DNA of 64,000 bases from Monocercomonoides exilis PA203 (Eukaryota > Protista > Preaxostyla), in contig LSRY02000029.1 of the NCBI GenBank assembly GCA_001643675.2, positions 1,054,001-1,118,000 on the forward strand, given 5' to 3'. The translations under genes and the position numbers were made by a program. Position 1 is the stretch's first letter. Every line of letters begins with the position of its first letter. The notes under the pieces were generated by a model. The model did not search any database, was not told where the DNA came from, and saw only the letters and a program-made list of their open reading frames with translations. Positions 6,166 through 45,400 of the stretch are shown here, one piece after another.

Positions 6166-7569
6166 ATGAGTGTTGTCGAAAATAAAAAACAACAAGGATT
6201 AAAGAAAATTAGAAGTTTGATGAGATCCTTTCAATATCCGCATATTGAAAGTAGTTTAGAACGAGTTACAACAATTGTCGCAAATGGAGAAGCTCGGGTT
6301 GCAGATGCTACAAACATGAAAGAATTTACTCGCTCTGCAATTGATAGGGCAGTCACAGCTGTGGAAAAAGGAAGGAAGGCAGGGAAAAATGGAAGACTAG
6401 AATTATTCAATCAGGAATAAAAGGAAACTATATTTGGAGTGCTTAAAATCGAATGTGAAAGTGGAACAAGTTACAATGCTGCGCAAATGAGGAAATTAGT
6501 TTGTTACAATTTTTAATTTGTTGTATTTATCTATTTTTTATATATTCAGATGAACACTATTATCAATGATAGGAAAAAAGACGACTTCGATGAAGAAGAT
6601 GAAGAGGTGAACATTTCCAAAGCATATCCCTATCAATACACCAAAAGGAATCCCGAGCTTAAGGCTTCACATCCTCGAAACGTCGACATCCAAACACTCT
6701 CTGCATCAAATCAACAAACTCTTCTTCCATTTTTCACTCTTCTACAAAACCTTCATGATAATCATCATTATTCTAACTCTCTCATCTTTAATATTGATGA
6801 ATTCTCTCTTCGACTCTCTGATTCTTTCTCGACTCTTGTTTTCCATCCTTCCGACATGCCTGCCGGTTTCTCCAAAACACCAATGAACATGCCGAATGCA
6901 ACTCTCGTCGTTGCAGCTGCAGCTGATGGTTACTCACTAAAAAGCGTCGTTCTGTGGCCTTGTCGGAAACTGCCAGATGAACTGCGCCTTGTTCTGAGTT
7001 CGCAGTTGGATGTTTGGGGTGAAAATGAAGGCTGGATGACTGAAGCGCTATTCCTCAAATATGCTGAAGAAGTGTTGCTTCCAGGGATCACACAAAGAAG
7101 AGAAACTTCGAAGAGGAGTGATGAACGTTGCCTACTCCTTCTTGATTCGCATTCATCGAGAGCGCAGCCTGACTTATGGAAAAGGTTTGCCGATTCTTCA
7201 ATAGATGTCGTCACCTTCGTGCCCCATACAACTCACATCGCACAGCCTTTGGATCGTGGAGTGTTTATTGTTTTTAAAAAGACAATAAATGCTAATTATG
7301 AAGCGCCTTCTTCTTCTTCTGTTGTTTTGCGACGAGAAGCACTGGCTGATGTGCTTCCACAAGCTTTGCAAACTTCTTTGTTTCCTTCAACGATCAAATC
7401 ATCGTTTGCGAAGAGCGGAGTACTGTCACATCAGTGGCACGAAGTGTTAGCCAAGCTGCCAAAAGAACCTTCCGTGACTCTGAAGAAAAGAACAAAAAGA
7501 TTTGATTATTTTGGAAAATTAATTACTGATGAAGAATTTTTATTAGAATATAAAAAAAGAAAAGGATGA
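6166..7569 (+). pseudogene. DD35D transposase with one intron (6499-6549) and a premature stop
   Basis: Motifs FNIDE / LLLDSHSS / QPLDRGVF, with 35 residues between the 2nd and 3rd Asp. Exon 1 (6166-6498) splices in phase 0 to 6550 but contains TAA at 6418-6420. The acidic tail continues in another frame after the A-run near 7552. Confidence 0.85.
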
Positions 7570-8807: not shown

Positions 8808-11800
8808 CTAATTTTCAGCAGGTGCATCGACCTCCTTCACGACAGAGCCCAAACTGTCGCTCATGATCAAAATCGAGAACCGGCGTGAGGTTTCATAGTT
8901 AGCTCTCCCTGAAACATAAGAACTGATATTCGTGCTCTTGTTCACAGACGCGTAGTCAAAGCACCCACGCAAATCAGTGAACCCATCCTTCACAAACGCC
9001 CCACTTTCACCACCTTGTTTTCCATACACCTTCACATACACCCCAGGCACAGGCCGATGAGTGAACTCCTCCTTCACAACGAGTCTTCCGGTCTCCTCAA
9101 ACAACTCTACATCCATGCCGCAGTTGAATAGCGCATCCGAGCGACTCTTTCCTTCATATTCTACCTCAACAAACACATTCTGCCGCTGCAGTTCGTCTGG
9201 CACAGGCACAACAACACTCCGAGCAAGATGAGTGGAAGAAGAAGAAGAAGAAGAAGAAGAAGAAGAAGAAGACGAGGAAGAAGCTGAATTCGATTCTTCA
9301 AAAGAAAATTCAATTTGCTTTGGCTTTACAATCGAAAAAGCCTTTGCTGAATCTTTTCCTTTCATAAACGGCTTCGTACTAAACAGACTTTCAATGTCCA
9401 CTCTATAGAACTTTATTTTTCCTGTTTTTTCCTTCCCATTCTGTTGTTGTAAAGTAATTGTATTTGCCTTTGCATCAATCACCATTTCCACTGTTGCCTC
9501 AACCGTCTTTGACTCTACCAGTTGTCGCTGTCTTTTACTCTCTCGTTCGGCCTCATTCTCAACAAGAATATCCTTCTTTCTCCCTCCTTTCTCTTCTTTC
9601 TCTTCTTCCTCTCTCTTCTCCTTCTCCTTCTCCTTCTCCCTCTGCTCTGCCGCAAACATCTTGTCCACCTCCTTGATCTGCTCATTCAGATGATCAAACA
9701 TCAGCTTCCATCGTGGAATTGAACAGTTTCTGTGTTTCTCAGCCACTCGTCGTGCTACAGTCAATCTTGGTGCTTCCATCGTTTCTTCTCCACATTTCCC
9801 GCTCTTTTTCACAGGAAGGGCACTTTCAGGGTTTGTCATGTCCAGATATGCACTCATGTAGTCATATTGAAGTTTCATTTCCATTTCATTCTCATTTTCT
9901 CTCTTTTGTTTTGTCGATCCGCTGGCTGAAGCAGATTCCATGCCGATTGTATCAAACAGTGCGCGCGCCTCATCTAATCTGTCCTGCAGCAAGAGATAGT
10001 ACGTCAACACCAGTTTTTCTCCATCACCTAAAAGTGAAGAACCAGACATCTCAGGCATCCATTGAGAATATCCATTGTATTCTTCATCTCTTTCAATATC
10101 TGCGTCACTCTCAAAAAGAGAAGATGAAGCATAAGCAGCGGCTGCACCATGTGCCAAGTAGATCAGATACTTTCTGTACTGCCGAGCAAGATTCGCATTT
10201 GGTATGCGTTCTTTCTCCTCTCCAAACAAGAAGGTGCGTGGATTGATCAGTGGGCGATACTCTAATACACGAAAAGCTCCTCTTGTCACGGGATTCTTCA
10301 CGAATATTGGAGACAGCACAGTCGCAAAGCTTGGCAATCGGATTTCGATTTCCTTTGAGACGAACGGATCGCACAAATACCTTTGCACAGCAGTAGCTGG
10401 CCCAAGGTGCTTCATAGAATACGAATAGACCTTTTCATTGTACACACCGCGGCGCATCAGAACAGCTATCACAGCATCAAATACATCCTTATCTCGCAAT
10501 CGCCACGCAATCATCGATAAATCCACATCTGCTCGGTGCAAATTCTCCTTCTCCAGAAACTCGAGTAACACTTCTTTCTCTGCCTCCTGAGACACATACG
10601 CCCAATCTCTTCGCTCCGGCTGCGCAGTGGCGTGCTCTGCCACAAGCACCTTATGTCCTCCTTCTCGGCTGCAGCACATGTAATGCCCTCTCATTGCAAC
10701 TTGCGCTGGATAGTGAACAAAAGCACCGCCTCGTGGGAAGTAGAACGAATATGACAGCGTCTTCGTGCCATATGCTCCCAGAACAACGCTCTGTGTCTTC
10801 GTCATGCTTCCTCTCAGCAACGGGATCGAACCGGCTGGCACTTGCATGAGCACTTCCACCGACCTCTGTGTGGCTGTTGTGTTCGTTAGCACCACATCGC
10901 ACATATATACTCGCCCAGCATATAATTTCTCCCAGTCCACATACTTCCTTGTTTTTCTCCCTTCCTCGTTCACCTCCCATTCCTCTGCCATGTCGCACAC
11001 AAACTCTTGCACCAGAACCTGCTTCATCTGTACAATTTTTCCTTTGCCTTTTTCTTCCTGCTTTTCTGTTCTCATTGATTCTCTTTCTAGCGCTGAATCT
11101 TCTTTTCCTTCCTCAACCGCCTCCATCTCCTTCACATAAAGCAGAGCTGCTGTGTTTTCACTCGAAATAGAAGCACTTGCTCTTCCACCGCTCATTTGAA
11201 TCGCCTTCTCAACTGAAACAGGGCGCAGTGAAACATCGGTCAACGCTGCAGCAAACGCCGCAGAGGTAAAAGAGTTAGCGCAATCCAAAATATTTGCAGA
11301 TACAAAAGGAACGCAATTTGCACAATCAGATGCGTCAGTTCCTATTCCATCTGCCATGCACCCAAAGAGATATTTTGCATAATCCAAGAAGAACTCGTTC
11401 CATCCAACGAGTGGATCATCTCTATTAGCCACGCGATGGTATTGGTTCTCGCGGTATTCTTTTGTATTCTCAACTTGTTGGAACTTTGCAACCGGAGCTA
11501 TCTCTTCCTCTTCGGCATCATAGTCATAATGCACATTCTGCACTGCCATCTTCATCTTCATTGGCATTGGTGACGGGGCTGCTGAACAACAAGCAGGAGC
11601 CGCAAAGTTCATACTTCGACTTTGAACGCTCCGCATTAACGTTCGCGGTGCGAATCCAAATCCCACACCAATCGGAGCTTTCGGAGCCGCTTCGCGCCTG
11701 AGGCTTGTATCAAGCATCAATTCAGGTCCAGTTCCTCCACCACGCAAGCGGAGCACAAGATCCAATGTTGCTTTGTTTTTGATGTTGTAATGACCCATCG

Positions 11801-14800
11801 TGTAACGATCTTCCAGTTGCCTACCTTCTGATATAATCCTCTGCTGGTCAGGAGGAATCCTTTCTTTGCGAAAGATCATATTCCTTAATTCCTCAACAGT
11901 TGTATTTCGTCTTACAAAAAAGGAAAGGCGCTTTCCTGTAAGCATTTTCACAAAAATCAACATCTGGCCCAAATCCTCTCCTTCATTGAATGCTCGCGCA
12001 GACGCTTCCTTCACTCTGCTCTTTCTGCTTGTATCATTCTTTCCTTCTTCGTTCTCCGCTTCAATCAACTCCCCAACATCCAACCCAGACTTAAGCGCCA
12101 TTTTAAATAATCTTTCTTCCGCTTCTTTGCCTCTCTGTTCTGCTTTAAGCTTTCCTTCTACTTTCTCCACCAGCGCAACACATCTGGCCACACTCCTCTT
12201 CAGCAGTTCGTCTCCTCTTCCGGCTTTCTTCTCTGCCTGCCCCAACGCAACCAATCTTGCCAGAACAAACACCTGCTCCACTGCGTTCAACTGCGCAAAC
12301 AGAGCCGGCTCTGCATACTCCTCAAACAGTTCCACATCGTCCGTAGCAAGAAGATAGTGATCAATCACCGTCTTCTCCTTTTTACTTGCTAAAGCCGGAC
12401 GTATCGCCTGCTCAAAGAATTTTGGTGCCTTTTTGTACAGCAGCAAATTTGTCTCATGGCATGCAAATTCACTGTATCGGTCGCAAAGCTCTCTGTATTT
12501 CTTCTTTTTCTCTTTCTCGTCTTCGTCTTTTCCTTCATCAACCAGTTTGTATAGTTCCTCAAATGCATCGCACCACGCATCAAATGTTCCGACTGAGGCT
12601 TCATTCCCCAAGTCTGCTTTCATCGAACACTTCAGCAGATGGAGAATTCCACCAAAGCAACTGTACGTTTCATATGTTGATGTTGACAGATCATCAATCG
12701 TGCGCGACGCAACACACTTGGAAAGATACGCTTTTTTCAATGAGAAACTTCCATTCGAATTTCTGCTTGCACATGTACAACCAGATGAATCAGAAGAAGA
12801 GCTTGCTGCTACTTTTTCCTCGTTCTCCTTTTCATTGCAAGCTTCGCAACAGCTGTCATTCAACACTTTCTTTGGTAGAATCAGCGCTGAGCGCATCTTC
12901 TGAAGAACATGCTTCTTCGGGTCAAATGCGTTCATCAGTCGCATTTCTCTCAGCCGGCCTTCTTCTCCTTCTCCTTCTTCTCCTTCCGCTTTCTTTCTTC
13001 CTCTGCACAAACTCAGATCTACCGCCAATACACGTGCCACTATACGGTCATCGTCTGTTGCCAACACAGTCAGAGTGCTCTGTCCTTTCTGCCCTATAAC
13101 CTGAGTAGGAATCACTACACGCCGAGTTTCCCCAACTCCCACAGGCTTGTTAAGAATCACTGTCGTAGTATCAGTAAGGAAGTCGATGTTTTTCCGATCA
13201 ACTTGACATTCTCTCCAATTCTCAGTTCTTGTTTCATCGAAGTCTCGTTTTTGACATCTAGTTGCTTCCATTTTTGCCATTAATGGTCCATTTGTTGCAC
13301 CTCCACAAATGGTGTCGCTGCTATATGAAGTTGCTTCCTTTCGAGTGGTTTCTTGTGTGACAACTGGATGCATTAGCACAGACGGTGCATCCAAAGTGTT
13401 GCCCAAACGAGCTGCAGATGATTGTCTTCGCTGAATGTACTCCTGCTCAGTGCCCAGTCGGTTGTCTGATGTGTAGAACGAGCTGACTGCCATTGTTGTT
13501 GTCGCCTCTGCCTGTCTCACAAACCACATTGCATTCAGCTGCGTCTCCGGGTCAAAGACGCCAGCAAAGTGTGTTCCAAATGCATGTATTCGCGTCATTT
13601 CTGTGCAGTTTCTGAGAATAACTTCCACATTTCCTGCTTCTGCTCCTTCTCTAATTTGACGCACCCCTGCAACTGTTACTGCCGCTTCACTTCCTCTTCG
13701 CACTATCCTCCGCGCGCCACACAAAAGCGATGTGTTATCCTGTCTCACCCTACAATCACTTTCTTCTTCTTTCGATTTTTGTGTTCCTCCTTTTTGGCTT
13801 ATTTGATTTTTCTCGTTATTTTCAGCTGTCTTGCGTGGTTCAATCAGAGAAATTGACGTAACCACCCATGTCTCCACCTCAAACAACATATATTCGCCAC
13901 CAGGCAGATCGGCTGGCAGAATCGCTTTCCCTTCCTTCAGCACCATCTTCTCTGTCACATCATGTAAATGCACTCTTGCATCTGGTCCTCCCATTTGTGT
14001 CAGTGTAATCATCCTCTTCTCAATCCTCGTCTTTGCTCTTTCCTTTTCTCTCTCTTCATACCCCTCTTCTTCTCCTTCATCCCAGTCCATCTCCAACGGC
14101 ACCTCCAGCTCTTGCCCTGCATACCCTACAACCCTATCTCTCCTGTTATAAAGATGTATCGGAGTAGGCACAATACCGTGACCTTCCAAGCCAAACAGCT
14201 GACTTGCCTCATTCGTTCCATCACCTGAGTCCATCGTTATCTCAAAAGCACTCACGTCTCGCAAAGAGCCTAATGTAATCTCTCCATTTTCGTCTGTCAT
14301 TAACTGTACCCCTTTCTTGCAGTAATCGGACCAGATGTTAACATACCGAAAGAAGAACTTGAAAGAGACAGCATGATATTTCACTTTCTCTCCACTTTTT
14401 CCAAACACACGCAGTACATAACATGTTTCCCCTTTCTTCACATTCTTCTCTTCTATTCTTCGCACCAGCGCTGCTGCCACAAACCCTCGCGTGCTATCGA
14501 TAGTGTTCACCGTAAATGTCTTCTCTCTCGATACTGGCACGGTACGCCCTAAGTCTGAGTGAACAACAATAACCCCGTTCACCTGCACATGCACCTTCGC
14601 AACATTCTCAGGAACGGTATATTCTACACACGTCAACTCTCCATCAACAAACTGCAGACCTGCATACTGCCGTGTCACATCAATTCCCTCCACAGTTGTT
14701 GATGTCACCTTCACTGATACGCCACGCACCATTCCAACTGATGCAGGCTCATAACAACAAAACAGCTGAGGGCGTAAGAGGATGTGCGCGTTGGCATGAC

Positions 14801-16808
14801 GGATTAGCTCCTCGCGATCAATGTAGATTCCACATCCAAACGTGTACATCTCCGATTTATGCTCAAATCCATCAACCAACACACAGAACTCGTCCGCCAA
14901 GTCTTCCACAATCGCCTGCTTTATCCCTGCACCACTGCCAGTTGCATAAGGTACCAATATCTCGCATGGCTCCAAACCCGGATGCTTCTTTGGAGTAGTG
15001 CTTGCGCTATGTTTCTTTCCATCCACCCACACCGCCACTCGACTTCGTGGCAAAGGCATGTTCAGTTCGTCCAGCACAGTCACTGCCTGCCCGTCTGCGA
15101 TGCACCGCGACATCATTCTTAAGCTCCCCTTTCGAATCAAAGCACGGCTCGTCAATCCGCCTCCAGACAGAACAACCACAAACACTCCTCTCTTTTGCAC
15201 CCGCTCTCCTTCTCCCCGCTCAACTTCGTCCTCGTCTTCTTCTTCTTCTTCCACTTTCTCTCCTTTTTTGTCCAACACAAGTGAAGGAAGCTCTATTCGC
15301 TCTGTATGACGGATCACTGGTGCATATGCTGAAAAATCAAGAAATCGTTCGTAGTTCGCCACCAATCCGTCAAGTTCCATTCCTGCATCCACTTCTCGAT
15401 GCATCAGCGAATAGTATGCCTGCGTATTCACCTCAAACACTTGCAAACGCATCTCCTGCACATTCTTCACTACAACATTTACTGACGGAACCTCTTCGGC
15501 TTCGCTTCCAAAGCCAAAGTATGTCTGGTTGTCGTCTGCAAACGTGAGCTCTGATTTTTCCGTCAGCTGGCGAACAAAATACTCGTCGGCGTCCTTCCTT
15601 CCCACTTTACTCACATCCATTTTCCCGTTCGTTAGCTTTGCCTCCGTTACTAATCTTCGCAATTCCGTTTCTATAATGTACGTCTGGAATTTCCGCTCAT
15701 CTACGCCATTAGCGATGAAATGAATCACCTGCTTCCGAATCAGTTCTGTGCTCCCATTTCGCTCCATCCATTGTAATTCAGCTCTTGGCACTCCAATTTT
15801 CTCTAGCCAATGCATATCGACTCGACATACATTTCTATATCTGTTGCTCATATTACTCCACGTTTTACAAATACCAACATCCCGTCTCGGACACTTCAGA
15901 AGGCTCAAAAACCTCTCCAAATTTGACTCCCCTCTCAGCAAATCATGAACCACGCATGCTTCCATCAGCGAAGCCCTCATCCAAAATGCAGCTTCGTTCA
16001 ATTGGCATGCAATGTTCCATATCCTCTCAAAATATTTATCTTGAGCAGTTTTATCTGTTTCCCATACTACATCTACTCCTGGTACCATTCGAATCAGCAT
16101 CATCTCCACCCAATGTTGGTTTTTGCGTAATTCTGCCTTTTCTTCTCCCAATTTCTCCAATTGTTCAATAGTTAAATCAACCGACAAATCAGACAGGTGC
16201 GTGTTTGGCTTTGAAAGATATAGCTTTATCAGATCCAAAAGCCCAGGATATGAGCACGAACGCACATTATTGATGAACTGCTGTAGATCATGCTTCTCAA
16301 GCTTTTTGGCATCAACTTTTAGCATTCCCTCCGGCGTAAGTTCGTTGAGGATCCGCCGTTGTGTTGCCGCTTCCTTTAGCACATTTCCAAAGTCAACTTC
16401 GTCCTCATTAAGTACAGTTGGCAACGCAACCTCATCTCTAGGTTCATCTCGTGCTCCTATATGTCGTTGAGCATCTGTAAAATCCCTATGTAATATATCA
16501 TCCCGGAGATGCTCCAATACTTCTTTTTGAGAGGCTTTATCCATCTTTCCAAAAGATGTTAAACTTCGCCTCAGTTTCAGTTGTGATACAACAGAACTAT
16601 TTTCCCCTAGTTTTTCAATAAGCTTTTTCAACAAATTTTCTTCTTCTGCAGTGGAATGCTCCGGACTTTTCAATTGTTCCCGCAGAATCGCATAATACAA
16701 ACGCTCATTAGAATTTGCAGGCAAAACTTCAAGAGCTGCATCACGCTCCTTTTCGTCCTTCGCGAATACAAACTTTTCAAGGAATGAAACACTCACGGAT
16801 TCTTCCAT
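8808..16808 (-). CDS. Giant (~2670 aa) intronless protein of an uncharacterised bacterial-like family with an internal ubiquitin domain
   Basis: Uninterrupted 8-kb ORF (first ATG at 16808). N-terminus [18 protein letters not shown] and C-terminus [22 protein letters not shown] resemble, from recall, ~2000-aa hypothetical proteins of Planctomycetes/myxobacteria and some protists. Ubiquitin at 11736-11963. Confidence 0.85.
11736..11963 (-). other. Embedded full-length ubiquitin domain (76 aa)
   Basis: [11 protein letters not shown]...IPPDQQRII...LVLRLRGG, exactly 228 nt. 42/76 identical to canonical ubiquitin by manual ungapped alignment. Confidence 0.97.
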
Positions 16809-16963
16809 GTTTGTTAAAAATTTCAAACATATTTATCAAGGGATAGATCAAAACAGTTTGACAAATTTTAATATGAGAAAACGAAAAATTCAAAAAGGTT
16901 ATAAGGACACACATTGAAAGAGGTGATTATTAATGAAATTTAAGATAATATCACTTGTTTGCT

Positions 16964-33492: not shown

Positions 33493-36400
33493 ATGATGAG
33501 TCTTTGTGCACTGCTGTTATTTACATTTTTTGAGGCAAGGAAAGAATGGTTCAACATTCACGATAAATTGCTGAAAGACGAAATTATTAAATATTCTCCA
33601 TTTTCAATTTCTCAAAGCAGAGAATCAATGGAAGACTCCTGCAACACGGAAAATTTTTTCTTTAAAATATTTTCTACATCTTCAACTGCTTGCAATTCTA
33701 CACTACTCGTGGGGATAGGAGTTATTTCATCTATTAACAAAGTTATTAATTCTTCATTATCCGTTTCACAATTATACTTGCATGAAAAAAAGGGAAATGC
33801 ACTTTTTAATGTGCAGCATGGTTCAAAGTGCAGAATATACAGATGTATTGTTCATTTGAGGGAATATTCAAAAGAGCCAATATATTCTTCTTGTAGCATT
33901 CTTGAATTTGTTAATCTGTCGTTTTCGTTTTTTTCACACAAAAACATTGCGTCAAACAGCATGGTGAATTTGTGGAATGAGAGTTCACTGATTGTCCAAT
34001 CATCATCATTTTCTTCAATTGTTGTTCAAATGAGCAATCCTCTTCTTGCCTCTGGAGATTTCGATTGTGTTACAACTTCTGATTGCTTTTTCAAAAATAT
34101 CAGCCATCTCCTTACAACAGATAAAGAGCATCATCTTTATTTAAAAGCAAAGGAGAGCATTATTTTTGGGTGCAAATTTTTAGGAGTTGAAAATCCCTTT
34201 TGCTCTGTGCTTGCAATTGGAGGTTACCCATCATCGTTTTTCTGCTTCAATTCTTCGTTTTTAGTGTGTTCAGCAACAGAGCGCAACAGAAAGGTTTTTG
34301 GCAGCTCCGATGGGGATGTTGTTATTGAACAGACAACGTTCAATGTAGAAAGCAAGCAATTGAATGGGGGGACGATATACGCATTTGAAACAAAATCGTT
34401 CACAATAAAAGGATGTTTCTTTGATAGATGCAATAATACTCATCCCGAAGGTTATGGAGGTGTTGTTTTCATGAGAGATGTTGGACCTTTTTTGATTCAA
34501 AATTGTTCAGCTGAAAAATGCATCGCAACAGGAAAGGAAGGAATAATGCGTATCGAAAATTCGCGTGATTCTGTAACAATTACCAATTTGAATTCTACAG
34601 AATGCGAAGGTTTTTATCGTGGAGTTGGTTTGATTGCAGGATCGCAATCTCCTGTGTGCTGTGCAAGTTTGAAAATGTCAAAAAGTCAAAGTAGAGCAGG
34701 TGAAGCTGGTGCAATGATGTTATATCTATCTTTCTCGTCATTTATTGCCACCGATTGGATATGTGATTCTAATTCAGCTGTTAATGTTGGAGGAGCAATT
34801 TATGTTATGAAAGATGTTGAAGGTTCTGTTAATCCAGTTTCTTTTAGGTATTGTTTTTTCATAAATAATTCTGCATATCAGGGAGCAGATATTGCATTTA
34901 CTGAGCATTATTTCAATCAGACAAATTCATCGTGTTTTCTGTTTTGCTTTTCGCAAAGCAACCAAAACAGAGTGTGGATGTGCACCAATGGATTACGAAG
35001 TTGTTCAAGCGGAGAAGAGCGAAATATTCTCCTGCCAAATCCATCTGGAAATGTTATTTATGTGAATCCAGCGCGAACATCAGGAGATATTAATGGATGT
35101 GGGGATGTTTCAAACGAATGCCACACAATTTGCTTTTCATGCAGTCAGTGGATAAACTCATATCACAAGACAGTCAAGCTATATTCAGGAGAGTATTCTG
35201 AATCCTCATTTTCTGTTGGGTTCCAACATATGACCATTGAAAAGAACACTTCTTCTTCAAGTGTTAAAATCTTAACGAATCCATCAAGTGGCGCATTTTG
35301 CACTCTTCTTGGTGGATCGTTGGACATGCGCGGAATGCAGTTTATTCACAGCTCGACATCTTCCCTAGATAAATGCATATTTTCTGAGAACAACGAGTAT
35401 TCTGTGCTTGTGCTGAGCGAGTGCTCGTTAAAGGCAGACTCAACTTCTACTGCATTTAGTGCACCATTTTTTTTGCTTACAAAAGGAGAGGCAAGACTCG
35501 AGAGTTGCGAGATATCATCAGTGGTTTTTGAGAGCACATCGCTATTTACCACAGAAAAGCAAGCACATCTTGCTCTGAGCAATGTGAAGATATCAATGAT
35601 TAGCCGCAGGATAGGCGATGGCTCAGTGTTCAGTAAGGCAGTTCAAGCAGAAGAAAGCTTTGTTCTTTCAAATGTTTCGATGAAGAACTGCAAGTGCTTG
35701 GATGGGAATGGAGGTGCGTTGTATCTGGAGCTAAATGCACAAAGCACAACACAGATTGGGGCGGATTCTGGCTGCATGTTCGACACATGCGCTGTTCCTG
35801 CAGAAAGCCAGAAAAAGAGAAAAGGAGGAGGAATCTATATACAGGTTATGGAGGGAGCCGATGGTTTCCAGCTCAAAATGCTTCAGTTTTCCAATTGCAA
35901 TGGATGGAAAGGGAAAAAAGTATTTATTGAAAGCAAATATTTGTCAAAGGTTATCAACACAGCAACGCTGGCATTCAACCCTTCTGTTGCTGTTGATTCG
36001 ACCGATCTGGATGAACTGAGCGGGATGGAGAACGTAGATCAAAACATGGTCATCCCACTTGTTGTGTTTCTGAGGAACTTCTCATCTCCTGCTTATGTGT
36101 CTGGGCAGACCACTGATTCAGACTATCGCCTTTGCGGATATAGCGATTATCCGTGCCAGAGCGTGGAAGGCGCTTCAGCTGCGCGATTTGCAAACACAAA
36201 GAGAAATATTCGCTTTCTGCCTTCCTTCTCCTTCCGAACAGAAACACTCCTCAACAGTCAATCGTATGCGTTTGACGTTGAGGAAGACAACACACCCATC
36301 AACATTGGCTCATCACAAGTGAAAGAGAATGAAGGGCTTTTGATCAATTCTGTGGAGACAAGTTTCAGCAGAATCAAATTTGTGCTTGAAGCATCTTTGA

Positions 36401-39400
36401 ATGGGAGGAGTGCCTTTATTCTATCAAATGCAAATGTATTGTCGATGTCCAACTGTGCGGCTGTGCCAGCTGTTTTGGGTACTTCTATTTCGTATTGCCT
36501 TGTGAAGATCACTAACGGAAAATTATCTATCAGCAACTTTGCAGTTCCTCTTGCACAGAAGTTAAACTTTGACAATGAACCATTTGTTGCTGTCAGTGGA
36601 AGTGCCTCTGCAGATTTTTATTCTTTGGATACGAATGGAATGACAACATCTTGTAGCAATGGGCTGATATCTGTCGACTCAGGGAACATCACAACAATTA
36701 ATAACAGCACATTTCGTAGCTCAAATTTGACAAGTTCTGCATTTATCGTCAGTTCCTTAGGAACATATTTGTTAACCATCAAAAATTCCACTTTCGAAGA
36801 TATCAAAAGAACTACGGGAAACGGCTCGTGTGTGAATTTGAATGCAAGAAATAGCTATGCGAGCTCATTCACAGCAAGCAATTGCACATTCACTGGATGC
36901 AAAGTGACTGAAAACGGAAAAGGAGGTGGGGCGATTGCTACTCACCTCAACAGTCAGACAGCGCTAACACTCGAGTTGTCCACTTTCACTTTGTGTCAGG
37001 CTCCAAAGCCAAATTCAGGATCAAGCGGAAAAGGTGGAGCCATACAAATAATTTTCGACGAAGCCAACGCTCAGTTTGTTCTCTCAAAATCGCTTTCATT
37101 TATCTCTAATACAGCCGAACACGGAGATGATGTCTTTGCATGTTCGCTGCATCTGGAGTGGTGTGTTATTTCTACCACATTCCAATTCTTTAATCAAGAA
37201 GCACCATTTTCCCCTGAAAGTTGCGCTGGAATTGATTCACAGTGGCCAAATGTGATAATCCCACTTGTGTTTTATCTTCTACCACGCAAAGCAGGAGTTT
37301 ATGTCTCAAAAGAAGGGAATGATGTTTCTGTCTGTGGATTTGCAGAATACGCTTGCAAAACTATCGGATTTTCTATATTTCAAAATGAAGATTCTGTTCA
37401 GCTGATCATTCTCCCTAATTATGAATACGAAGAAGTTGTTTCTCTCTCGTCTGCCAACGAAATCTTAATCGAAGGCAAAGCATTGGAAACAAAGATGAAA
37501 ATGATTGGAACCCAATCCTCGACTGCAAATTCAATGATAACAGTTTCCCAAACATCAACATTTAGGTATCTCGACTTTTATCTGCAGCCAACCATCCCCA
37601 GCCCTCAATCATCTGCGATCCTTGTATACAGTGCAAATGCAATGCTTCATCTGGAGGACTGCTCTTTGAAAACTGAGCAAGGTGAGGAAAAATGCACTTT
37701 TAGGTATTTGGTTGTTACTGAAGGTTCGTTTGTGATGATAAGATTCACAATAAACTCAATTGGATTCCAATCTGTTGAGGTGATAAAAGTTCACAACGAA
37801 GGAAGTGGATCAATAGACTCTTGCACGTGGACAAATGTCACATCTGCTGTTGATACTGGAATCATCTCATATTCTTCAGCTGGCACTCTGAACATACGCA
37901 ACACAACAATCAGCCAGTCAGCTTCTTCATGCTGCTCATTTGTGGAAGATAAGCATGGCAAAAATCTGGTTGTTGAAAACAACACTTTATCAGGGATAAT
38001 CAAAAACGAAGGGAACGGAAGCGTGATCAAGGCAGAAATTGGTGAAAGCGAGTCACTGGAGCTGAACGACATTTCAGTCGATTGCTGCTCTTCGGTGAAT
38101 GGATGCGGCGGAGGGGTGTACATTAGCACAAGCTCCTCTGCCAAAGTTCGGATTGGCAAGGAAGGCACAACCACAAGCTTTGTCAGGTGCAGTGCAAAGG
38201 GAACACTGCCAAAATGCGGATTTGGAGGAGGAATATTTCTGAAGTGTGCAGACTGGCTGGCTGATCTTGTCCTCTCAGAGATGTCTTTCGGAACTGAAGG
38301 TGATGGAACATGCAATGAAGCAGAGGGAGGAGGAAGCGATGCGTTTGTTGAAGGACTCGACCTGGAAAAAATCATCACCAATCAGTCATTCAAGTTCGAT
38401 ATCAACAAAGAGTCAACAGCTGAATTTGGGAAGCTGTGTGGTTTTGAAGATGGGAATGTTTCGTATGCCATTCCTCTGGTTGTGTTTTTGCTGACGTTTG
38501 AACCACCTGCAATTGTGGGGGGGAGCTCTGGGTTTGACTATCGCATGTGCGGTGTTTCGATATATCCCTGTGCAACGATCCCCTTTGCAATCTCCAAGCG
38601 CTTTCCAGCACCCGATTCATCTGGCGCATCCATCAGGCTGACAGCAGACTTTTCCTTCAAGAATGCCATATCTTTTGACACACAGCCAGCCGAAGTGATT
38701 GCTGAGCAAATTGGAGCCGTTGTTGATGTCAGAAGCGATGGAGCGGGAGAAGGTGCTGGATTATTGCTCTCTTCCGTTAATGTGAAGTTCAGTGAAATTG
38801 TGTTTGGTTTACCATGCTCTTTTGAAGAACCCTCGCGATCTTCTCTGTTTCTATGTTCGTCAGCCACGCTAACCATTGACAGATGCGAGTTTCAAAACAG
38901 CAGCAGCTCAGCTGTTGAGTACAGGATCATATATGTGACAAATGGGAAAGTGGAATTGAATGGGTGCTCAATAAATGAACTTGCAATGGGAAATGCAGAG
39001 ATTATTGCACTTGATGGGAGCAACGCTGATTGTGCGATTGAGGGAATAGAAACATCCATTTTGAGCAAAGAAGGGGATGGGGCGCTGATTTTGGTTGCGA
39101 GAGGGAAAAAATTGAATATTGAGAACAGCAGCATCGAAAATGTGACTCTTCCAAACAGCAACCATATCACAATTAATTCTTTGTCGAATGGGTTTCTAAA
39201 AAACATAACATTTGGAAACCTAACGAAAACAAATGGGGATGGCGCAGTGATTAGTGGCGGAATTGGATCGAACGAAGAGCTGGAGGTGGAAAACTGTTCA
39301 TTTTTGCGCTGCAGCTGTTACTCAGCTAGAACGATAGGAGGATGTGTGCTCATGGATGTTGAAGAAGGAGGCGTCTTCCGATTCGAGAGAAACAAAGTGG

Positions 39401-42400
39401 AGTTCTGCATTGTGTCTAGTGGGGATGGATTTGGTGGAGGGCTGTTCCTCACCTTCACCTCTTCACACGTCGATTATTCCATGAGAAACAACACATTTGA
39501 GAATAATGGAGCATTCCGGGGGAAGGATGCATATGTTGTATGCGAAGAGCCGGGCGCAGTGATTGTGCTGATACATTGGAACGGATCTGTTTCTGAAGAG
39601 GCAGCTCCAGAACGCTTTTGGGTGCGCAGTCCTTCTGAGTCGATCGATGGAGGAAGCACAATGATCGACTACCTGTTCCCTCCTCAGACCTCATTTGTGT
39701 TCGTGGATGGTGCTGTCTCGGCTATTGAGAACTGTGGATCGAAGCGGAACCCATGCGCCTCAGTGGAGCTGGGTTTTCAGAAAATGGATTCTTCACACTC
39801 CATCATCCAGCTCGAAGGAAACACTCCCATCGATGCTATTGTGAACAGACACGGAATCTCCCTCACCATTCAAAGTAATACAACAACAAAAGCGATGATA
39901 TTTGGAAGAAATGGAAAATTTGAGCTTGTCGAAGGACCTCGCTCAACCACCCTCACATTTTCCAAGCTTTGCTTTGTGCTTCCATCTTCTCCCAATCCTT
40001 CACCAGAAATGAGTTCACTTGTGGAAGTTAGCATTGGTCAATGCTCATTCTTAGATTGCTCATTTGAGCAAGGAAGCGGCAGAAATTCCAATCCTTCGAA
40101 ATGGATTGTTTCAGGAGGAGGCGGAGTTGTGCACTTTGCCTCTTGCGCTCTTGGAGAGATTCCATTTCAGACAGCTGGAGTTGTTTTGATTGACGGAGCA
40201 TCGCTTCTGTTGGAGGCCTGCAGCTTTTCTTCTATCTCTTCTGACGCACGAAAGGGTTTGATAACTGGAAGCGGGAATTGCGAAATAACGCTGAAGGATA
40301 CAGGATTTGAGAATTGCAAGACGACAAATGGACACACGTTGGAAATTATTTGCCCGAAATCAGTGCATGTAAGCGGAGCATGCACATTTGATGGATGCAC
40401 TTCGACAGAAGGGGATGGAGAGGCTCTTTATTGTGTTCTGGAGGGAGAAGGATCTTTGGTGATGAACAAAACATCAATTGTATCTTGTGAAGTGAATCAG
40501 ATTAATGGGAGAGGAGGCGGAATCTATCTCGATTTGAAGGGAAGCACAAATAAATATTTGTTTTCTGGAATAACATTCAGCGGAAACGAGGCGTTTGAAG
40601 GGAAAGACATGTTTGTGAGAAGCGCTGATTTGAATGCCTCAATTATTCCATCTCTGTTTGATTTCGAGTATTTTGGAGAAGACGAACTACCAAAAGTCGA
40701 TCTGAAAGGAAGAGATGAAACACTTTTTATGAGTGCATCTGCGGATCTGCTGTATTTTTTGGTGAAGTTTTCTTCGTCGACGATAAGCGTTGGATCGGCT
40801 GGAATCGACTTTATTGGGTGTGGAAAGGCAGAAACACCTTGCCACTCGTTGTGGCGAGGTGTTAACAATTTAGAGGCATCTTCAGAATCTCAGACATGCT
40901 CCGTTGAAGTGATGGACGAGGTTTTGATAAGTGAGTGCTTTGCGTTTGAATTAGCTGAACTTCAAATTGGATTTTCTTCATCAGCTGCTTTGCGTTCATT
41001 TGCCAAGCTGATAGTTTCTCAAACAGCAAGCGGATCAAACCCATCAATTTTCAGTTCGAGCAACTCCCTGACGTTTTCCTTAGTGGAGTTTCATCTTCCA
41101 TCGCTCTTCACAAGTGGACAATCTGCCTTGTTTTCCTCAACAGATGGATATCTTACACTTAATTCAACCTTTCTTTGCTCTAATACTACTTCTGTGCTTG
41201 AATACATTCTGCTTCTGAGCAAAGGAGGAACAGTGCAACTGCTAAATGTTTCAATTTCTTCTGTGACATTTTCAAGTTGCCCGATAGCACTTTCATCTTA
41301 TGTGATGCTTGAAAATTGCCACTTCCGAAACATAAGTACACATTCGAGCATTGGAGGTGGAGCAATTTCTGCCAACTTGGAGCGATCAGATTTGCTACGA
41401 GCGAAGAACTGTGAGACAGAACTTTGCAAATGCTCCATCAAAAACGGGAAAGGGGGATTTTTATATGCAGATTGCTCGAAATCGACAGCAACAGCACCAC
41501 TACGATTTGAAGGTGAAATGACGTTTGAGAGAAATGATGCGCAGCTAGGCAAAAACATATTTATTGCATCTACTGAATTGAACGCTTCAGTCACTTTGAC
41601 AACATTTGCATTTTCATTCGAATCGATGAAAGAAGACAGCAATGCGTTTGTGGGGATTGAAGGAGAAAGCGAAGAACTGGATTTATTCAGATATTTGGTT
41701 TCTTATTCCTCAGCTTCAATTTTTCTATCGGCAGACGGAGAGGATGTGATGAGATGTGGAAGCACAGATGATCCGTGTCGAACATTTTGGAAAGGAATGC
41801 AACAGATTGACGAGGAAGAGATAGTCAAAGTGATTACAATCAACAGAACCACTCCTGTTGAAAACACATTCAATCTCTCCTCATTCACAATTCGATCAAG
41901 TTCCTTGGATGAAGACGAAGATTACAAGTCGATTCTTTCTTTTCGAGAAAAGTCTGGAGAAATGACTGATCCATTTTTGCGATGTGAAGGCGAGCTTTCG
42001 TTGAAGCTTATCACACTTGTAATTGAATCATCCTTCAACAATTCTGCATCAGAATTGATTTTGTGTGAGAATGGAGTGTTGTCTTTTGAAAAATGTTCGT
42101 TTGAAACAGAAGGTATTTCCACTGGAAAGCGGGAAATATTGTGTAATTTAGTAACTTGCATGAAAGGAAAGCTTTTGCTTGCAGAAGTGTCAATGGAATC
42201 AGCGAGCATCGGGAAAAATGCAATTGCAATTGGGTCTGTAACTTGCATCGCTAACAATTTCACATGCACCTTTGTGAATATTTCTGATGGAAGCATTTTT
42301 GAATTTGTTGAATCAACAGAAATGGGAAAGGGAATGAACTCTGATGAAAAATCCAAATTTTTAATGAATGAATCGACAATAACTTCTGTAACAAGAACAG

Positions 42401-45400
42401 ACAACGGAGCATCAGTGATTGACTGTAAAAGAGAAAGAGATATTTCAATTGATGTGAGTGGAACAACTTTGAGCGACTGCAAAGCTGTCGAAAGTCAAAA
42501 AGGAGGAGTTGCTTTTATAAAATTGCCAGAAGAGGGCTCATTTTCTGTTTTGAATTCAACGATGATCCGTTGCTGCTGCTCGAATGAAGGGAAAGGCGGT
42601 GCATTTTATATCGATGCAACGGGAAGTGGATCACTGCATTTCTTGTTCCAGAGTGTTATATTCACAGGAAATACGGCAAAAGTTGGGAACGACATTTATG
42701 TTTCGTGCCACAACATATCGGAACAAATCAATGAAACCCAATTCAAGTTTGATTTGAGAGAAGGTGTCTACGTGAGACAGAACGCGATTTATGGGATGGA
42801 CAAAACCGATCACAGAGAAGACACGAATCTGTTAGATTTCATCACGATTTATCAGGCTGACACAATTATTGTGTCATCGCTACGTGAGAACGGAGGAAGG
42901 AATGACAGACAATGCGGAACATATGCTCTCCCGTGTTTATCACTGGATTATGCGATTGCACATGTGACTGCCGATTTTGAGTCGCATGTTGTTGTGGATG
43001 GGGCATCTGTGATTGAAAGTGAAATTGGGCTTGACAATGTGCTTCTCTCGTCACGCTCGAGATATGTGGGCAATGTCACAATACACTCGATTGCCACTGG
43101 ATTAACTGATGCAGTAGTCACCACTCTCAACGCAGTTTCTATCATGAATCTTTGCTTTTCGTTTGAAGCAGATTTTTTGTGCCCGCATTCGACTTTAATT
43201 TCTCCTCAATCGGGGATTGTTGAGCTGACGAATTGCTCGTTTTCATCGGCTGCGAGTCTTCCTTTGCGTTCTCTCTTTGATTTTAGCAAAGGAAACGGAT
43301 CGATAAATTCCTGCATATTCAACTCACTAATTCTTCGATCATCGGTGATAGAAGCTTCAGCTTCCTGTTCTGTCATGATATCCTTCTGCCAATTCAGCAC
43401 CATAAATTCTGGGGGCTCTGTGATTAATTGTGAAAAATGCAGAAATTTATTTATGATGCACTCATCATTTGCAAACAACTCGCTTTCTTTGCCTTCAGCA
43501 AATGTTCCGTCTCTTCTGGCAGGAATCTCCATTGGAAACTTAACTCTCTCAAATTGTTCATTTATTGGGAAGAAACACACTTTGGAAAAAGGAATATTGG
43601 CTGTGGTTTCTCAGTGTCCAGAAGTTTTGCTTAATCTCTGCACTTTTCACGGATGCAATGATTTTGAGATGAAAAACGAAAGGAGCAGCAAAACAGAAGA
43701 ATTATGCAATTGGAATGGATCACTGATAGACATGCAGAAGATCTGGGCTGTTATGAAGTACACAACAATTGCGAACAGCTCTGATGGAGGGGCGAGTGTG
43801 GAAGGGGGAAGTGTTGTGATTGAGAAGGGAGAGTTTGTGGGGAACAATCCTTGGATAGTGGGATACACATCAGCAAGAAGGAACATTGTGTGCAGAGAGA
43901 TGGGGGAGGTGAATGTGAAGAGTGTGAAAGGCGGAGACGGGCAGGAAAGAAACGAATCGCTTTGGATGCTGAATGAAGGATGCACATTGAGCGGGATAGT
44001 GGAAGAAAGGAAAGCTTCTTTGTTTGTCCCCACTTTGGAAAGTGTGGCTGTGGAAGAGGAAGGAGCAGAGTTGAAGGTGACATTTAAAGGGCAACTTCTT
44101 TTGCCTTGCAATTTATCGTTTCGGGTGGTGACAGCCATCCGATCAGAAGCGCTGGTGGTGCGATATGAGTTTGAATCCGAAGGGTTTGTCTCGGAAGATG
44201 AGGCTTGGGGGAAAATACCTTCGAAATCAATTCGAGAGGCAGAAGAGGAAGCAGAAGTGAGTGTTTCGATTCTTTTTGGAGAAAAAGAGGTACCATCTTC
44301 CACTGAAGCAATCATTCTGAAGAACAAAAGTGAACCCCAATCAAAGGGAGATAATATTGTTGCTGAAGGTGGAAAAGAAGAAAAGTCATCATGGGCATTT
44401 ATAATTATTATAATGCTATCAACACTTTTTCTAATTGTATTTCTTGGATTTATCATCTTTTTTGTTCGATGGAGAAAAGCAAAGAACAGAACAGAAGAAT
44501 TAGAAGAGATTGTGAACGACAATATAAAAAAGGATCCGAAATCTTTTGAGTTGGTGACGATGGAGATGTCACCTGAGGAGCAGTGGAGGAGAGCAGAGAG
44601 GGAGGCAGAGAAGAAGAATGAAGAAAGAATCAAGAAAAGAATATATGATTCAAATATGGAACATTCCGAGTCGTCAGAGCATCTTCTATCTGAGAGTGGA
44701 TCGACTGAATACATCCTTGGAAGAGATTCAGACAAGATCCCAGAATGGATGCTGGAGAAAGTGGATGAGAAGGAGAAAGATGAAGAAACAAGAAAGAGAT
44801 CGCCTTCACCTTCCATTTCATCCACTTCAACCACTTCAACAACTGATTCAGATTCGACTTTTGTTCAGAGAGAGGATCTTTGCCCAACCACTTCATCGAT
44901 GTCGAATCTGGTGGATGCAATGGCCTGTTCATCTCCTCATGAGAAACTGATTGTGGACCTGAGGGATTCACTGTTCATGCTGTTGCATGGAAAGAACGAG
45001 AAGAAAGAAATGGCGATAGGCACTCTGAAGGAGAGGGAGCAGACAGCTGCTCAGATCCTGTTCTGGGTGGCGAATGGAGCTCTCCATTCCTTTGATGAAG
45101 AAAACGAATTTCCTTCTCTTGCCAATCTGAGTCCTCACATTGTATTGTTTTCTGAGCATATGGTCATCACAATTGCACTTCATTCTGACAGTTCAACCGA
45201 CTCAGACACTTCATCCATCTCATCCACTTCCACGATTGTGACATCTTCGTCTGATGGCTCGCTGATGAATAAGAATAGAAAAGACTCTCCACCACCTTCA
45301 TCAGCGTTTGAGGACGAGGCAGACAATAGAGAGGAGCGTCTGAGGTGGAAAGCGCCAGAGCTATTGGTAAAAAAGAATATGGGAGCAACAAAGGAATCAG

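Follow-up and report, generated by a model that had tools for sequence, protein, structure and literature searches.

Why does a giant protein of Monocercomonoides exilis, a mitochondrion-free gut protist, carry a complete ubiquitin in the middle of its chain, and is it cut there? The question is raised by a window of 64,000 nt (the whole stretch of DNA analyzed; strain PA203, assembly GCA_001643675.2, contig LSRY02000029.1, positions 1,054,001 to 1,118,000), in which an intronless open reading frame (ORF) on the minus strand (8808-16826) encodes the protein. The ORF has 2672 codons counted from TTG, and residue 7, the first Met (nt 16808), is its probable start. By homology and modeled domain order, the product belongs to the CAGE family. 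That a complete ubiquitin lies in an internal loop of this CAGE subunit is real and unusual.

Translation of positions 11736-11963 (minus strand) gave 76 residues that start with Met, end with LRLRGG and lie in frame as residues 1622-1697 of the ORF. Pfam PF00240 matched residues 1624-1695 across the full profile length (positions 1-72 of 72; E-value 7.4e-19) and above the gathering threshold (67.7 bits; cut-off 25.4), which places the segment in this family. Furthermore, residues 1-76 of the insert aligned to solved ubiquitin chains (E-value about 1e-20). The whole ubiquitin that the initial annotation had read at this position, at about residues 1622-1697, is thereby confirmed. Compared with the organism's own ubiquitin, taken from its polyubiquitin and ribosomal-fusion genes, 43/76 residues were identical (57%), close to the 42/76 estimated earlier. 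The insert therefore lacks the near-invariance of ubiquitin proper (K48R, K63N, H68D and K27R are among the changes). I36, R42, I44, V70, L71, R72, L73, R74, G75 and G76 are all present in this copy (hereafter C24), and position 77 is Gly, the first residue of GTGPELM, and not Pro. Thus, the C24 copy has the sequence L71-R72-L73-R74-G75-G76 followed by a non-Pro residue, as in a fusion cleavable by deubiquitinases (DUBs), with a predicted scissile bond between Gly1697 and Gly1698 (between nt 11736 and 11735, minus strand).

Apart from ubiquitin, a Pfam and NCBIfam scan of the host protein gave no match. A word-based search returned an 85% identical paralog (P0001; MONOS_1119; C14), which is annotated at NCBI as one 2665-residue product including ubiquitin, together with homologs from two other oxymonads, Streblomastix and Blattamonas. 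About 55 further homologs came from bacteria (Planctomycetota, Verrucomicrobiota, Myxococcota and others); these are about 2100 residues long and have no Pfam domains. One of the bacterial proteins, P0016 (WP_428261538.1; Haliangium, 2120 residues), is a full-length homolog of the host protein (E-value 2e-134). WP_428261538.1 stands in the supplementary homolog table of the CAGE paper, which also holds Blattamonas, Schlesneria and Ozemobacteraceae entries (bioRxiv 10.1101/2025.09.22.677704). In that work, McCafferty et al. described CAGE as a homotetrameric hollow cage of about 1 MDa and unknown function from Tetrahymena and Dictyostelium (AbpF), with thousands of homologs in bacteria and protists (bioRxiv 10.1101/2025.09.22.677704). 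In addition, AlphaFold2 models of host residues 1380-2575 and of the N-terminal half of the homolog P0013 were set against the domains listed in section 8 of the CAGE paper. The order agreed: helices, a run of sandwiches, a helical domain, an unassigned stretch and further sandwich and helical domains. Because P0016 is a tabled CAGE homolog and the domain order agrees, we conclude from homology and models that the host protein is a CAGE-family subunit. It had first been called bacterial-like, which holds insofar as the family is found in bacteria, but the family is also present in many microbial eukaryotes.

Comparison of the N termini revealed a signal peptide in many bacterial homologs and none in the oxymonad ones, in line with the CAGE paper, which reports signal peptides in bacterial relatives and none in eukaryotic members (bioRxiv 10.1101/2025.09.22.677704). 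Since the oxymonad homologs have no signal peptide, the M. exilis protein is expected in the cytosol, the compartment of the ubiquitin enzymes. It resembles CAGE1 (Tetrahymena I7MLD7) and AbpF (Dictyostelium) of the same family in length (about 2100-2700 residues), in the lack of Pfam domains, in domain order, in the phyla of its bacterial relatives (Planctomycetota, Verrucomicrobiota, Myxococcota) and in the missing signal peptide. Unlike the described CAGE subunits, the members of one M. exilis paralog clade contain a whole ubiquitin within the unassigned loop. The tetrameric cage was described for the complexes of Tetrahymena and Dictyostelium. Ubiquitin is not mentioned in the text or supplements of the CAGE paper (bioRxiv 10.1101/2025.09.22.677704). 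The gene neighbourhoods of three bacterial homologs had nothing in common. A search of PDB sequences with the family profile matched no chain, and no solved CAGE chain was found by fold searches either.

Where in the subunit does the ubiquitin sit? In alignments of 14 and 57 homologs, conservation ended near residue 1574 and restarted at residue 1788. The unalignable loop in between comprises 108-153 residues in bacteria, Streblomastix and Blattamonas versus 214 residues here, that is, about one ubiquitin unit more. Across all homologs it varies in sequence and in length (108-290 residues). Because the loop is unalignable and longer by about one ubiquitin unit, these alignments identify the ubiquitin as an insertion into a pre-existing disordered, nonconserved loop, a point that the initial annotation had left to homolog alignments. 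It is preceded by a linker of acidic and basic residues (residues 1580-1621; 11964-12089, minus strand), the end of which (...NEGEDLGQ) is common only to ubiquitin-bearing paralogs, and followed by a low-complexity linker (residues 1698-1787; 11466-11735, minus strand; predicted local distance difference test score [pLDDT] below 50), which begins with GTGPELM. The charged linker and the Gly after the diglycine agree with what had been reported for this locus, as does the Ala/Pro/Met-rich stretch, which lies about 45 residues downstream of the ubiquitin.

In CAGE1, domains 9, 10 and 11 are each built from segments flanking an unassigned stretch at about 1415-1495 (bioRxiv 10.1101/2025.09.22.677704). 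The loop of the M. exilis protein was mapped to this stretch by architecture and not by sequence alignment to CAGE1. In our model, elements that match these domains follow right after the loop, namely a strand (1789-1791), helices (1811-1862) and strands (1872-1899). By analogy, the loop would be an excursion from interlocked domains, and since the flanking segments build the same domains in the CAGE1 map, a cut within it would nick the subunit and not produce two separate proteins.

The M. exilis genome contains eight full-length CAGE paralogs. Four of them have ubiquitin at the same point (C24, the 85% identical C14 and two on contig 1); the other four, C19, C1:566k, C1:1654k and C2 (MONOS_6486), do not. 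It is also missing from all other taxa sampled (bacteria, Streblomastix, Blattamonas and the fornicate Aduncisulcus), so that a ubiquitin shared with other eukaryotic homologs, a check named earlier, was not seen in Streblomastix, Blattamonas or Aduncisulcus. In a tree calculated without the loop columns, the four ubiquitin bearers formed one clade with 100% SH-aLRT support. Because they form one clade and all other homologs sampled are without ubiquitin, the sequence relationships indicate that it was gained once, in the ancestor of an M. exilis-specific paralog clade. Proteins of 1470-4676 residues were also searched with the ubiquitin region, by a method that depends on shared words; only multi-ubiquitin or kinase proteins were returned, none of which matched the CAGE profile. 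In the tree, the oxymonad sequences grouped together and separately from the sampled bacteria, with the Aduncisulcus homolog on a very long branch. Lateral transfer from bacteria was considered, but as sampling comprised bacteria, oxymonads and Aduncisulcus and no other eukaryotic CAGEs, no direction of transfer can be claimed. Misassembly, considered at the outset as a possible source of the ubiquitin, is ruled out because four full-length paralogs, spread over three contigs of an Oxford Nanopore (ONT) long-read assembly, all have the in-frame insert at one and the same place, and many pseudogene fragments of this assembly contain it too.

The codons of the insert provided evidence of constraint. 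Between C24 and C14, the ratio of non-synonymous to synonymous substitution rates (dN/dS) of the ubiquitin was 0.38 (15 non-synonymous and 10 synonymous changes), and that of the core domains was 0.15-0.28. Between the two subclades, the ubiquitin had a dN/dS of about 0.22 and 39% amino-acid identity; the core domains were 72% identical. The ubiquitin frame is open in all four copies, and frame and fold-determining residues have been kept over a divergence with dS above 1. Since its dN/dS is 0.2-0.4, we conclude at the codon level that the ubiquitin domain is translated and under purifying selection. Ile36, Ile44, Arg72 and Gly75-Gly76 were kept in 4/4 copies, and positions 8, 70 (Val, Met or Ile) and 73 were hydrophobic in all of them. 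Hence, the loss of Gly-Gly in orthologs that the initial annotation had allowed for was not observed in any of the four ubiquitin-bearing paralogs. The tail is a perfect LRLRGG in C24 and C14 and reads PRMLGG in the contig-1 pair.

Enzymes that could act on such a tail are encoded in the genome: we detected at least 110 ubiquitin-specific protease (USP) domain matches (PF00443), three ubiquitin C-terminal hydrolase (UCH) loci and several E1 genes. The complex of residues 1618-1703 with one M. exilis USP with intact Cys and His boxes was predicted with a score of 0.80, while the best control scored 0.14. The 0.80 mark was attained by 51 of 78 solved complexes and by 2 of 108 mismatched pairs. 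Contact agreement between runs was at least 79%, and the pLDDT of the partner was at least 83. In the model, the tail lies in the catalytic cleft, and residues 70-79 of the ubiquitin touch the segments that hold the Cys box and the His box. The features that had suggested a DUB substrate from the start are therefore intact insofar as the residues that DUBs need are present; docking of the tail in a USP cleft is seen in a predicted model only.

What would happen to such a subunit in the cell? When ubiquitin is fused linearly to a protein X, cellular DUBs cut the fusion as long as X does not begin with Pro. In pestivirus polyproteins, a ubiquitin inserted mid-chain serves as a cutting site for cellular ubiquitin C-terminal hydrolases (PMC8310069). 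Given the intact ubiquitin tail and the abundant USP and UCH enzymes, we tentatively consider DUB nicking after Gly1697 (Gly76 of the ubiquitin), with the two chains staying interlocked, to be the most likely outcome, and the cleavage proposed earlier is plausible. In this reading, one ubiquitin unit was inserted once into the long disordered loop, which departs from the interlocked middle domains of a cytosolic cage subunit and runs back into them. The domain still adopts the ubiquitin fold, keeping the Ile44 patch and, in the C24 copy, LRLRGG-Gly, and the abundant USP and UCH enzymes would most likely cut after Gly1697, probably during or soon after translation. The nicked subunit would then consist of two chains that the shared domains hold together in the cage: one of about 1690 residues from the N-terminal side, closing with the free Gly-Gly of the ubiquitin, and one of about 975 residues from the C-terminal side, with the N terminus GTGPELM.

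Several observations weigh against such nicking. The ubiquitin diverges about 3 times faster than the core (dN 0.60 versus 0.18), and the linkers on either side have the same dN/dS. Retention of the Gly-Gly is suggestive and not significant, with only two independent lineages, and the degraded PRMLGG tail of the sister subclade may be cut poorly. In the C24 copy itself, His68 is replaced by Asp, Lys48 by Arg and Lys63 by Asn. The USP complex score measures likeness and not binding, and solved USP-ubiquitin complexes may be remembered by the predictor. Furthermore, the exact predicted product of the C24 copy was not found in the protein collection. Finally, AlphaFold2 placed the loop including the ubiquitin at pLDDT 25-45. 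Host residues 1380-2575 were modeled with a pLDDT of 67.7, with a helical domain at 1380-1579 and the loop (1582-1788) left unmodeled because the alignment has only two rows there. This failure says nothing about the ubiquitin fold, and in the complex-prediction runs the ubiquitin was folded (pLDDT 83-84).

Nicking might, in addition, serve as built-in activation: the tethered Gly-Gly would let the E1-E2-E3 enzymes attach the cage covalently to targets or to itself, or the ubiquitin would act as a DUB lure inside the cage. We regard this extension as improbable. If it were true, the cage would act as a giant modifier of the ubiquitin type, functionally reminiscent of the thioester tagging known from C3 and A2M, or, in the lure variant, the loop would capture or report foreign or endogenous DUBs within the cage.

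Alternatively, the domain may stay uncut, and ubiquitin receptors (proteasome receptors of the Rpn1/10/13 type, UBA/UIM proteins or p62-type autophagy adaptors) or DUBs may use it to dock on the cage, which would tie the cage or its contents to the ubiquitin system. We consider this possible, if rather doubtful. The Ile44-centered patch is hydrophobic in both subclades while one tail decays to PRMLGG, as expected if surface binding is selected, and the purifying selection on the domain and the predicted USP fit agree with recognition without cleavage equally well. Integral ubiquitin-like (UBL) domains are common in eukaryotic proteins. They generally lack the C-terminal Gly-Gly and are uncut, but the CAGE insert keeps LRLRGG: the Gly-Gly is retained in 4/4 copies, and the tail is perfect in two. 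Moreover, a native-like ubiquitin with LRLRGG-Gly is expected to be cut in any eukaryotic cytosol, and many USPs are present in this one.

We judge it unlikely that the ubiquitin is a tolerated passenger, a chance insert in a permissive loop that folds alone and is harmless, whether cut or uncut, without consequence for the cage. The variability of the loop in all homologs is consistent with this, as are the restriction of the insert to one species-specific clade (four other M. exilis paralogs and all other taxa sampled do without it), the threefold faster divergence at a linker-like dN/dS, the in-frame stop in one bearer and the many fragments that are pseudogenes. However, a dN/dS well below 1, the frame and fold-determining residues kept over dS above 1 and the retained functional surface residues and Gly-Gly argue against a mere passenger. 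An artefact (misassembly, an intron or an untranslated segment, so that no protein with ubiquitin would exist) is highly improbable, since the missing C24 product in the protein collection stands against an in-frame insert in four paralogs on three ONT contigs, annotation of MONOS_1119 as one product including ubiquitin, codon-level purifying selection and a GC content of 0.40 versus 0.276 in M. exilis introns (PMC8767320).

The initial annotation had also compared the ubiquitin with the bait region of alpha-2-macroglobulin (A2M), and the fold of the protein bears on this analogy. The N-terminal half of P0013 was modeled with a pLDDT of 87, and the top Foldseek matches of this model were only A2M, C3, C5, CD109, A2ML1, TEP1 and bacterial A2M (E-value 3e-12 to 1e-9, probability 1.0, over 800-900 columns). 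With VIA-align, P0013 residues 411-1112, corresponding to host residues 423-1273, superimposed onto the macroglobulin (MG) domains MG1-MG6 (Z 13.3 over 432 residues, Salmonella A2M 156-1010; Z 11-13 to bacterial and human A2M [human 30-789], CD109, TEP1 and C5). Thus, the MG-domain array characteristic of the A2M/thioester family was found by structure comparison. None of the sequence signatures of this family (Pfam MG2, A2M, A2M_BRD and TED, at E-values up to 1) was detected in the host protein, and no CxEQ thioester motif is conserved in the homolog alignment. We conclude from the models that the protein is like the A2M family in architecture and does not pass as a member. Topologically, an insertion inside the last MG-like domain (about residues 1126-1222) would correspond to the bait region of A2M or to the ANA insertion of C3. 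The structural alignments with A2M stop at the end of this domain, and the ubiquitin lies about 400 residues beyond the insertion. In the bait analogy, the MG1-MG6-like array stands, but the position of the ubiquitin and the lack of a thioester motif do not fit. In the light of the models, the bait idea gains structural context from the MG array and the cage, though the insert is off the bait position.

The complete layout, read on the minus strand, is as follows. An all-helical N-terminal region without signal peptide (residues 1-422; 15561-16826; model of P0013 1-410, pLDDT about 90) precedes the MG1-MG6-like beta-sandwich array (residues 423-1273; 13008-15560; Foldseek and VIA), the last domain of which contains the helical and disordered insertion (13161-13451; mapped from a low-pLDDT insert at P0013 980-1065). 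The conserved helical domain upstream of the loop (residues 1380-1579; 12090-12689) was modeled with pLDDT 75-93 and includes invariant columns. In it, the Cys-His-Glu of a YACHEL motif (residues 1456-1458; 12450-12458) shows little or no variation among 57 CAGE homologs from bacteria and oxymonads. This triplet is a candidate for a catalytic or metal site, although according to the CAGE paper no conserved enzymatic motif is obvious (bioRxiv 10.1101/2025.09.22.677704). Downstream of the loop follows the C-terminal module (residues 1788-2672; 8811-11465), delineated by the AlphaFold2 model and conserved columns. The short strand and helices at its start probably pack back on the preceding helical domain. 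It comprises an MG7-like sandwich (residues 1935-2065; 10632-11024; Z about 10, root mean square deviation 2.1-2.5 A over about 105 residues, C3 MG7 805-914) and, in the model, a helical region (residues 2075-2439) followed by terminal beta domains.

Additional ubiquitin-bearing CAGE sequences were observed in the genome. The fourth ubiquitin-bearing paralog (L065; G000:C1:2418500-2427600, minus strand) is interrupted by one in-frame TAA (YHRVT*SHSVL), located about 165 codons downstream of the ubiquitin, and is otherwise 96-98% identical to its intact neighbor copy (dN/dS 0.1-0.2). Either the gene became a pseudogene very recently or the stop is a sequencing error. About 25 more ubiquitin matches lie in stop-riddled CAGE fragments of the contig-1 type, inside a dispersed repeat of about 6 kb. 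Copies of this repeat are L067-L069 (G000:C41:693500-700500, C19:1226000-1233000 and C80:582000-589000) and L070-L073 (C26:943500-950500, C2:1512000-1519000, C51:120500-127500 and C39:330000-337000). L067-L071 have identical gene-fragment boundaries (residues 945-2213, including ubiquitin) and 88-96% DNA similarity reaching past the gene-derived part. The more diverged L072 and L073 match from about residue 575 to residue 2262 and 2346, respectively. The pattern resembles that of a gene fragment picked up by a mobile element or of a segment duplicated repeatedly. A weak ubiquitin match at C2:221859 was discarded, as it is unrelated to the ubiquitin-less paralog P0004.

The ubiquitin system of M. 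exilis has further peculiarities. Many USP matches lie in uninterrupted frames of 4,000-10,690 codons (for example, C18:971861-973780, C69:1943494-1944951 and C2:942835-944391), an unusually large repertoire in giant proteins. The USP at C18:521289-522446 (L074; G000:C18:520900-522900, minus strand), which has an intact Cys box and GPY in place of the catalytic GHY in its His box, was dropped as a docking partner for this reason and may be a pseudo-deubiquitinase. Polyubiquitin and ribosomal-fusion type genes are represented by L001-L011. Head-to-tail diverged ubiquitin-like units are encoded at L021/L012 (G000:C1:1992700-1995100), L022 (C1:2078000-2080400) and L023 (C10:1705300-1707900), in ORFs of 681 and 951 codons with junctions that have lost Gly-Gly; on contig 1, the gene occurs twice, in inverted orientation and about 85 kb apart. 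A three-unit tandem family comprises L024 (G000:C17:1159200-1160500), L028 (C45:469600-470800), L029 (C46:485500-486800), L030 (C69:134600-135800) and L031 (C23:1120700-1121700). Most of its junctions keep a Gly-Gly of the RGG/GGK type, and these genes possibly encode further cleavable ubiquitin-like precursors. Small NEDD8-like genes (L036-L038; G000:C17:917100-917600, C74:29900-30400 and C70:198200-198700) end in LRLKGG, LRLPGG or LRLQGG, followed by short Cys-containing extensions.

Elsewhere in the window, an ORF for a DDE_1 (pogo/Tc-type) transposase (6550-7569, plus strand) lies 1.2 kb downstream of the CAGE gene stop, and the sole Pfam match of a 4088-codon ORF (33493-45759, plus strand) is a C-terminal protein kinase. 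The remaining long ORFs of the window had no Pfam match.

How does this arrangement compare with known systems? In the ubiquitin fusion precursors (polyubiquitin, Ub-eL40 and Ub-eS31), LRLRGG is likewise peptide-bonded to a following chain, and they are the type of substrate used by USPs and UCHs. Their ubiquitin, however, is N-terminal and nearly invariant, whereas the CAGE insert has about 1620 residues before it and is only 57% identical. In the pestivirus bovine viral diarrhea virus (BVDV; Osloss, CP1 and CP Rit), ubiquitin has likewise been captured mid-chain in a very long polypeptide (PMC8310069). There, host hydrolases have been demonstrated to cut after the ubiquitin and to create a new N terminus (PMC8310069), whereas for the CAGE insert cleavage is only predicted. 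Moreover, the pestiviruses are viral RNA recombinants with host-identical ubiquitin, whereas the CAGE insert is old, diverged and part of a cellular gene family. A2M, C3 and TEP proteins share with the M. exilis protein an MG-type array (Foldseek E-value 3e-12; Z 13.3) and flexible internal regions, and a cage-like homotetramer is found in both A2M and CAGE. They differ in that the M. exilis protein has no Pfam A2M/MG match and no CxEQ, should be cytosolic and not secreted, and carries its ubiquitin off the bait site. In proteins with integral UBLs (Rad23, Dsk2/ubiquilin, parkin and USPs with internal UBLs), a larger protein likewise includes a ubiquitin fold, which offers a surface for docking.

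Descriptions of the CAGE complex date only from 2025-26, and the insert is a natural experiment on which part of its subunit tolerates cutting or decoration. It may also connect the cage with the ubiquitin system. If the subunit is cleaved, it would contain a rare cellular, non-viral mid-chain ubiquitin processing site, of a kind otherwise represented by pestivirus recombinants and engineered ubiquitin-reference fusions, and a free ubiquitin end tethered to a megadalton particle would raise questions about conjugation.

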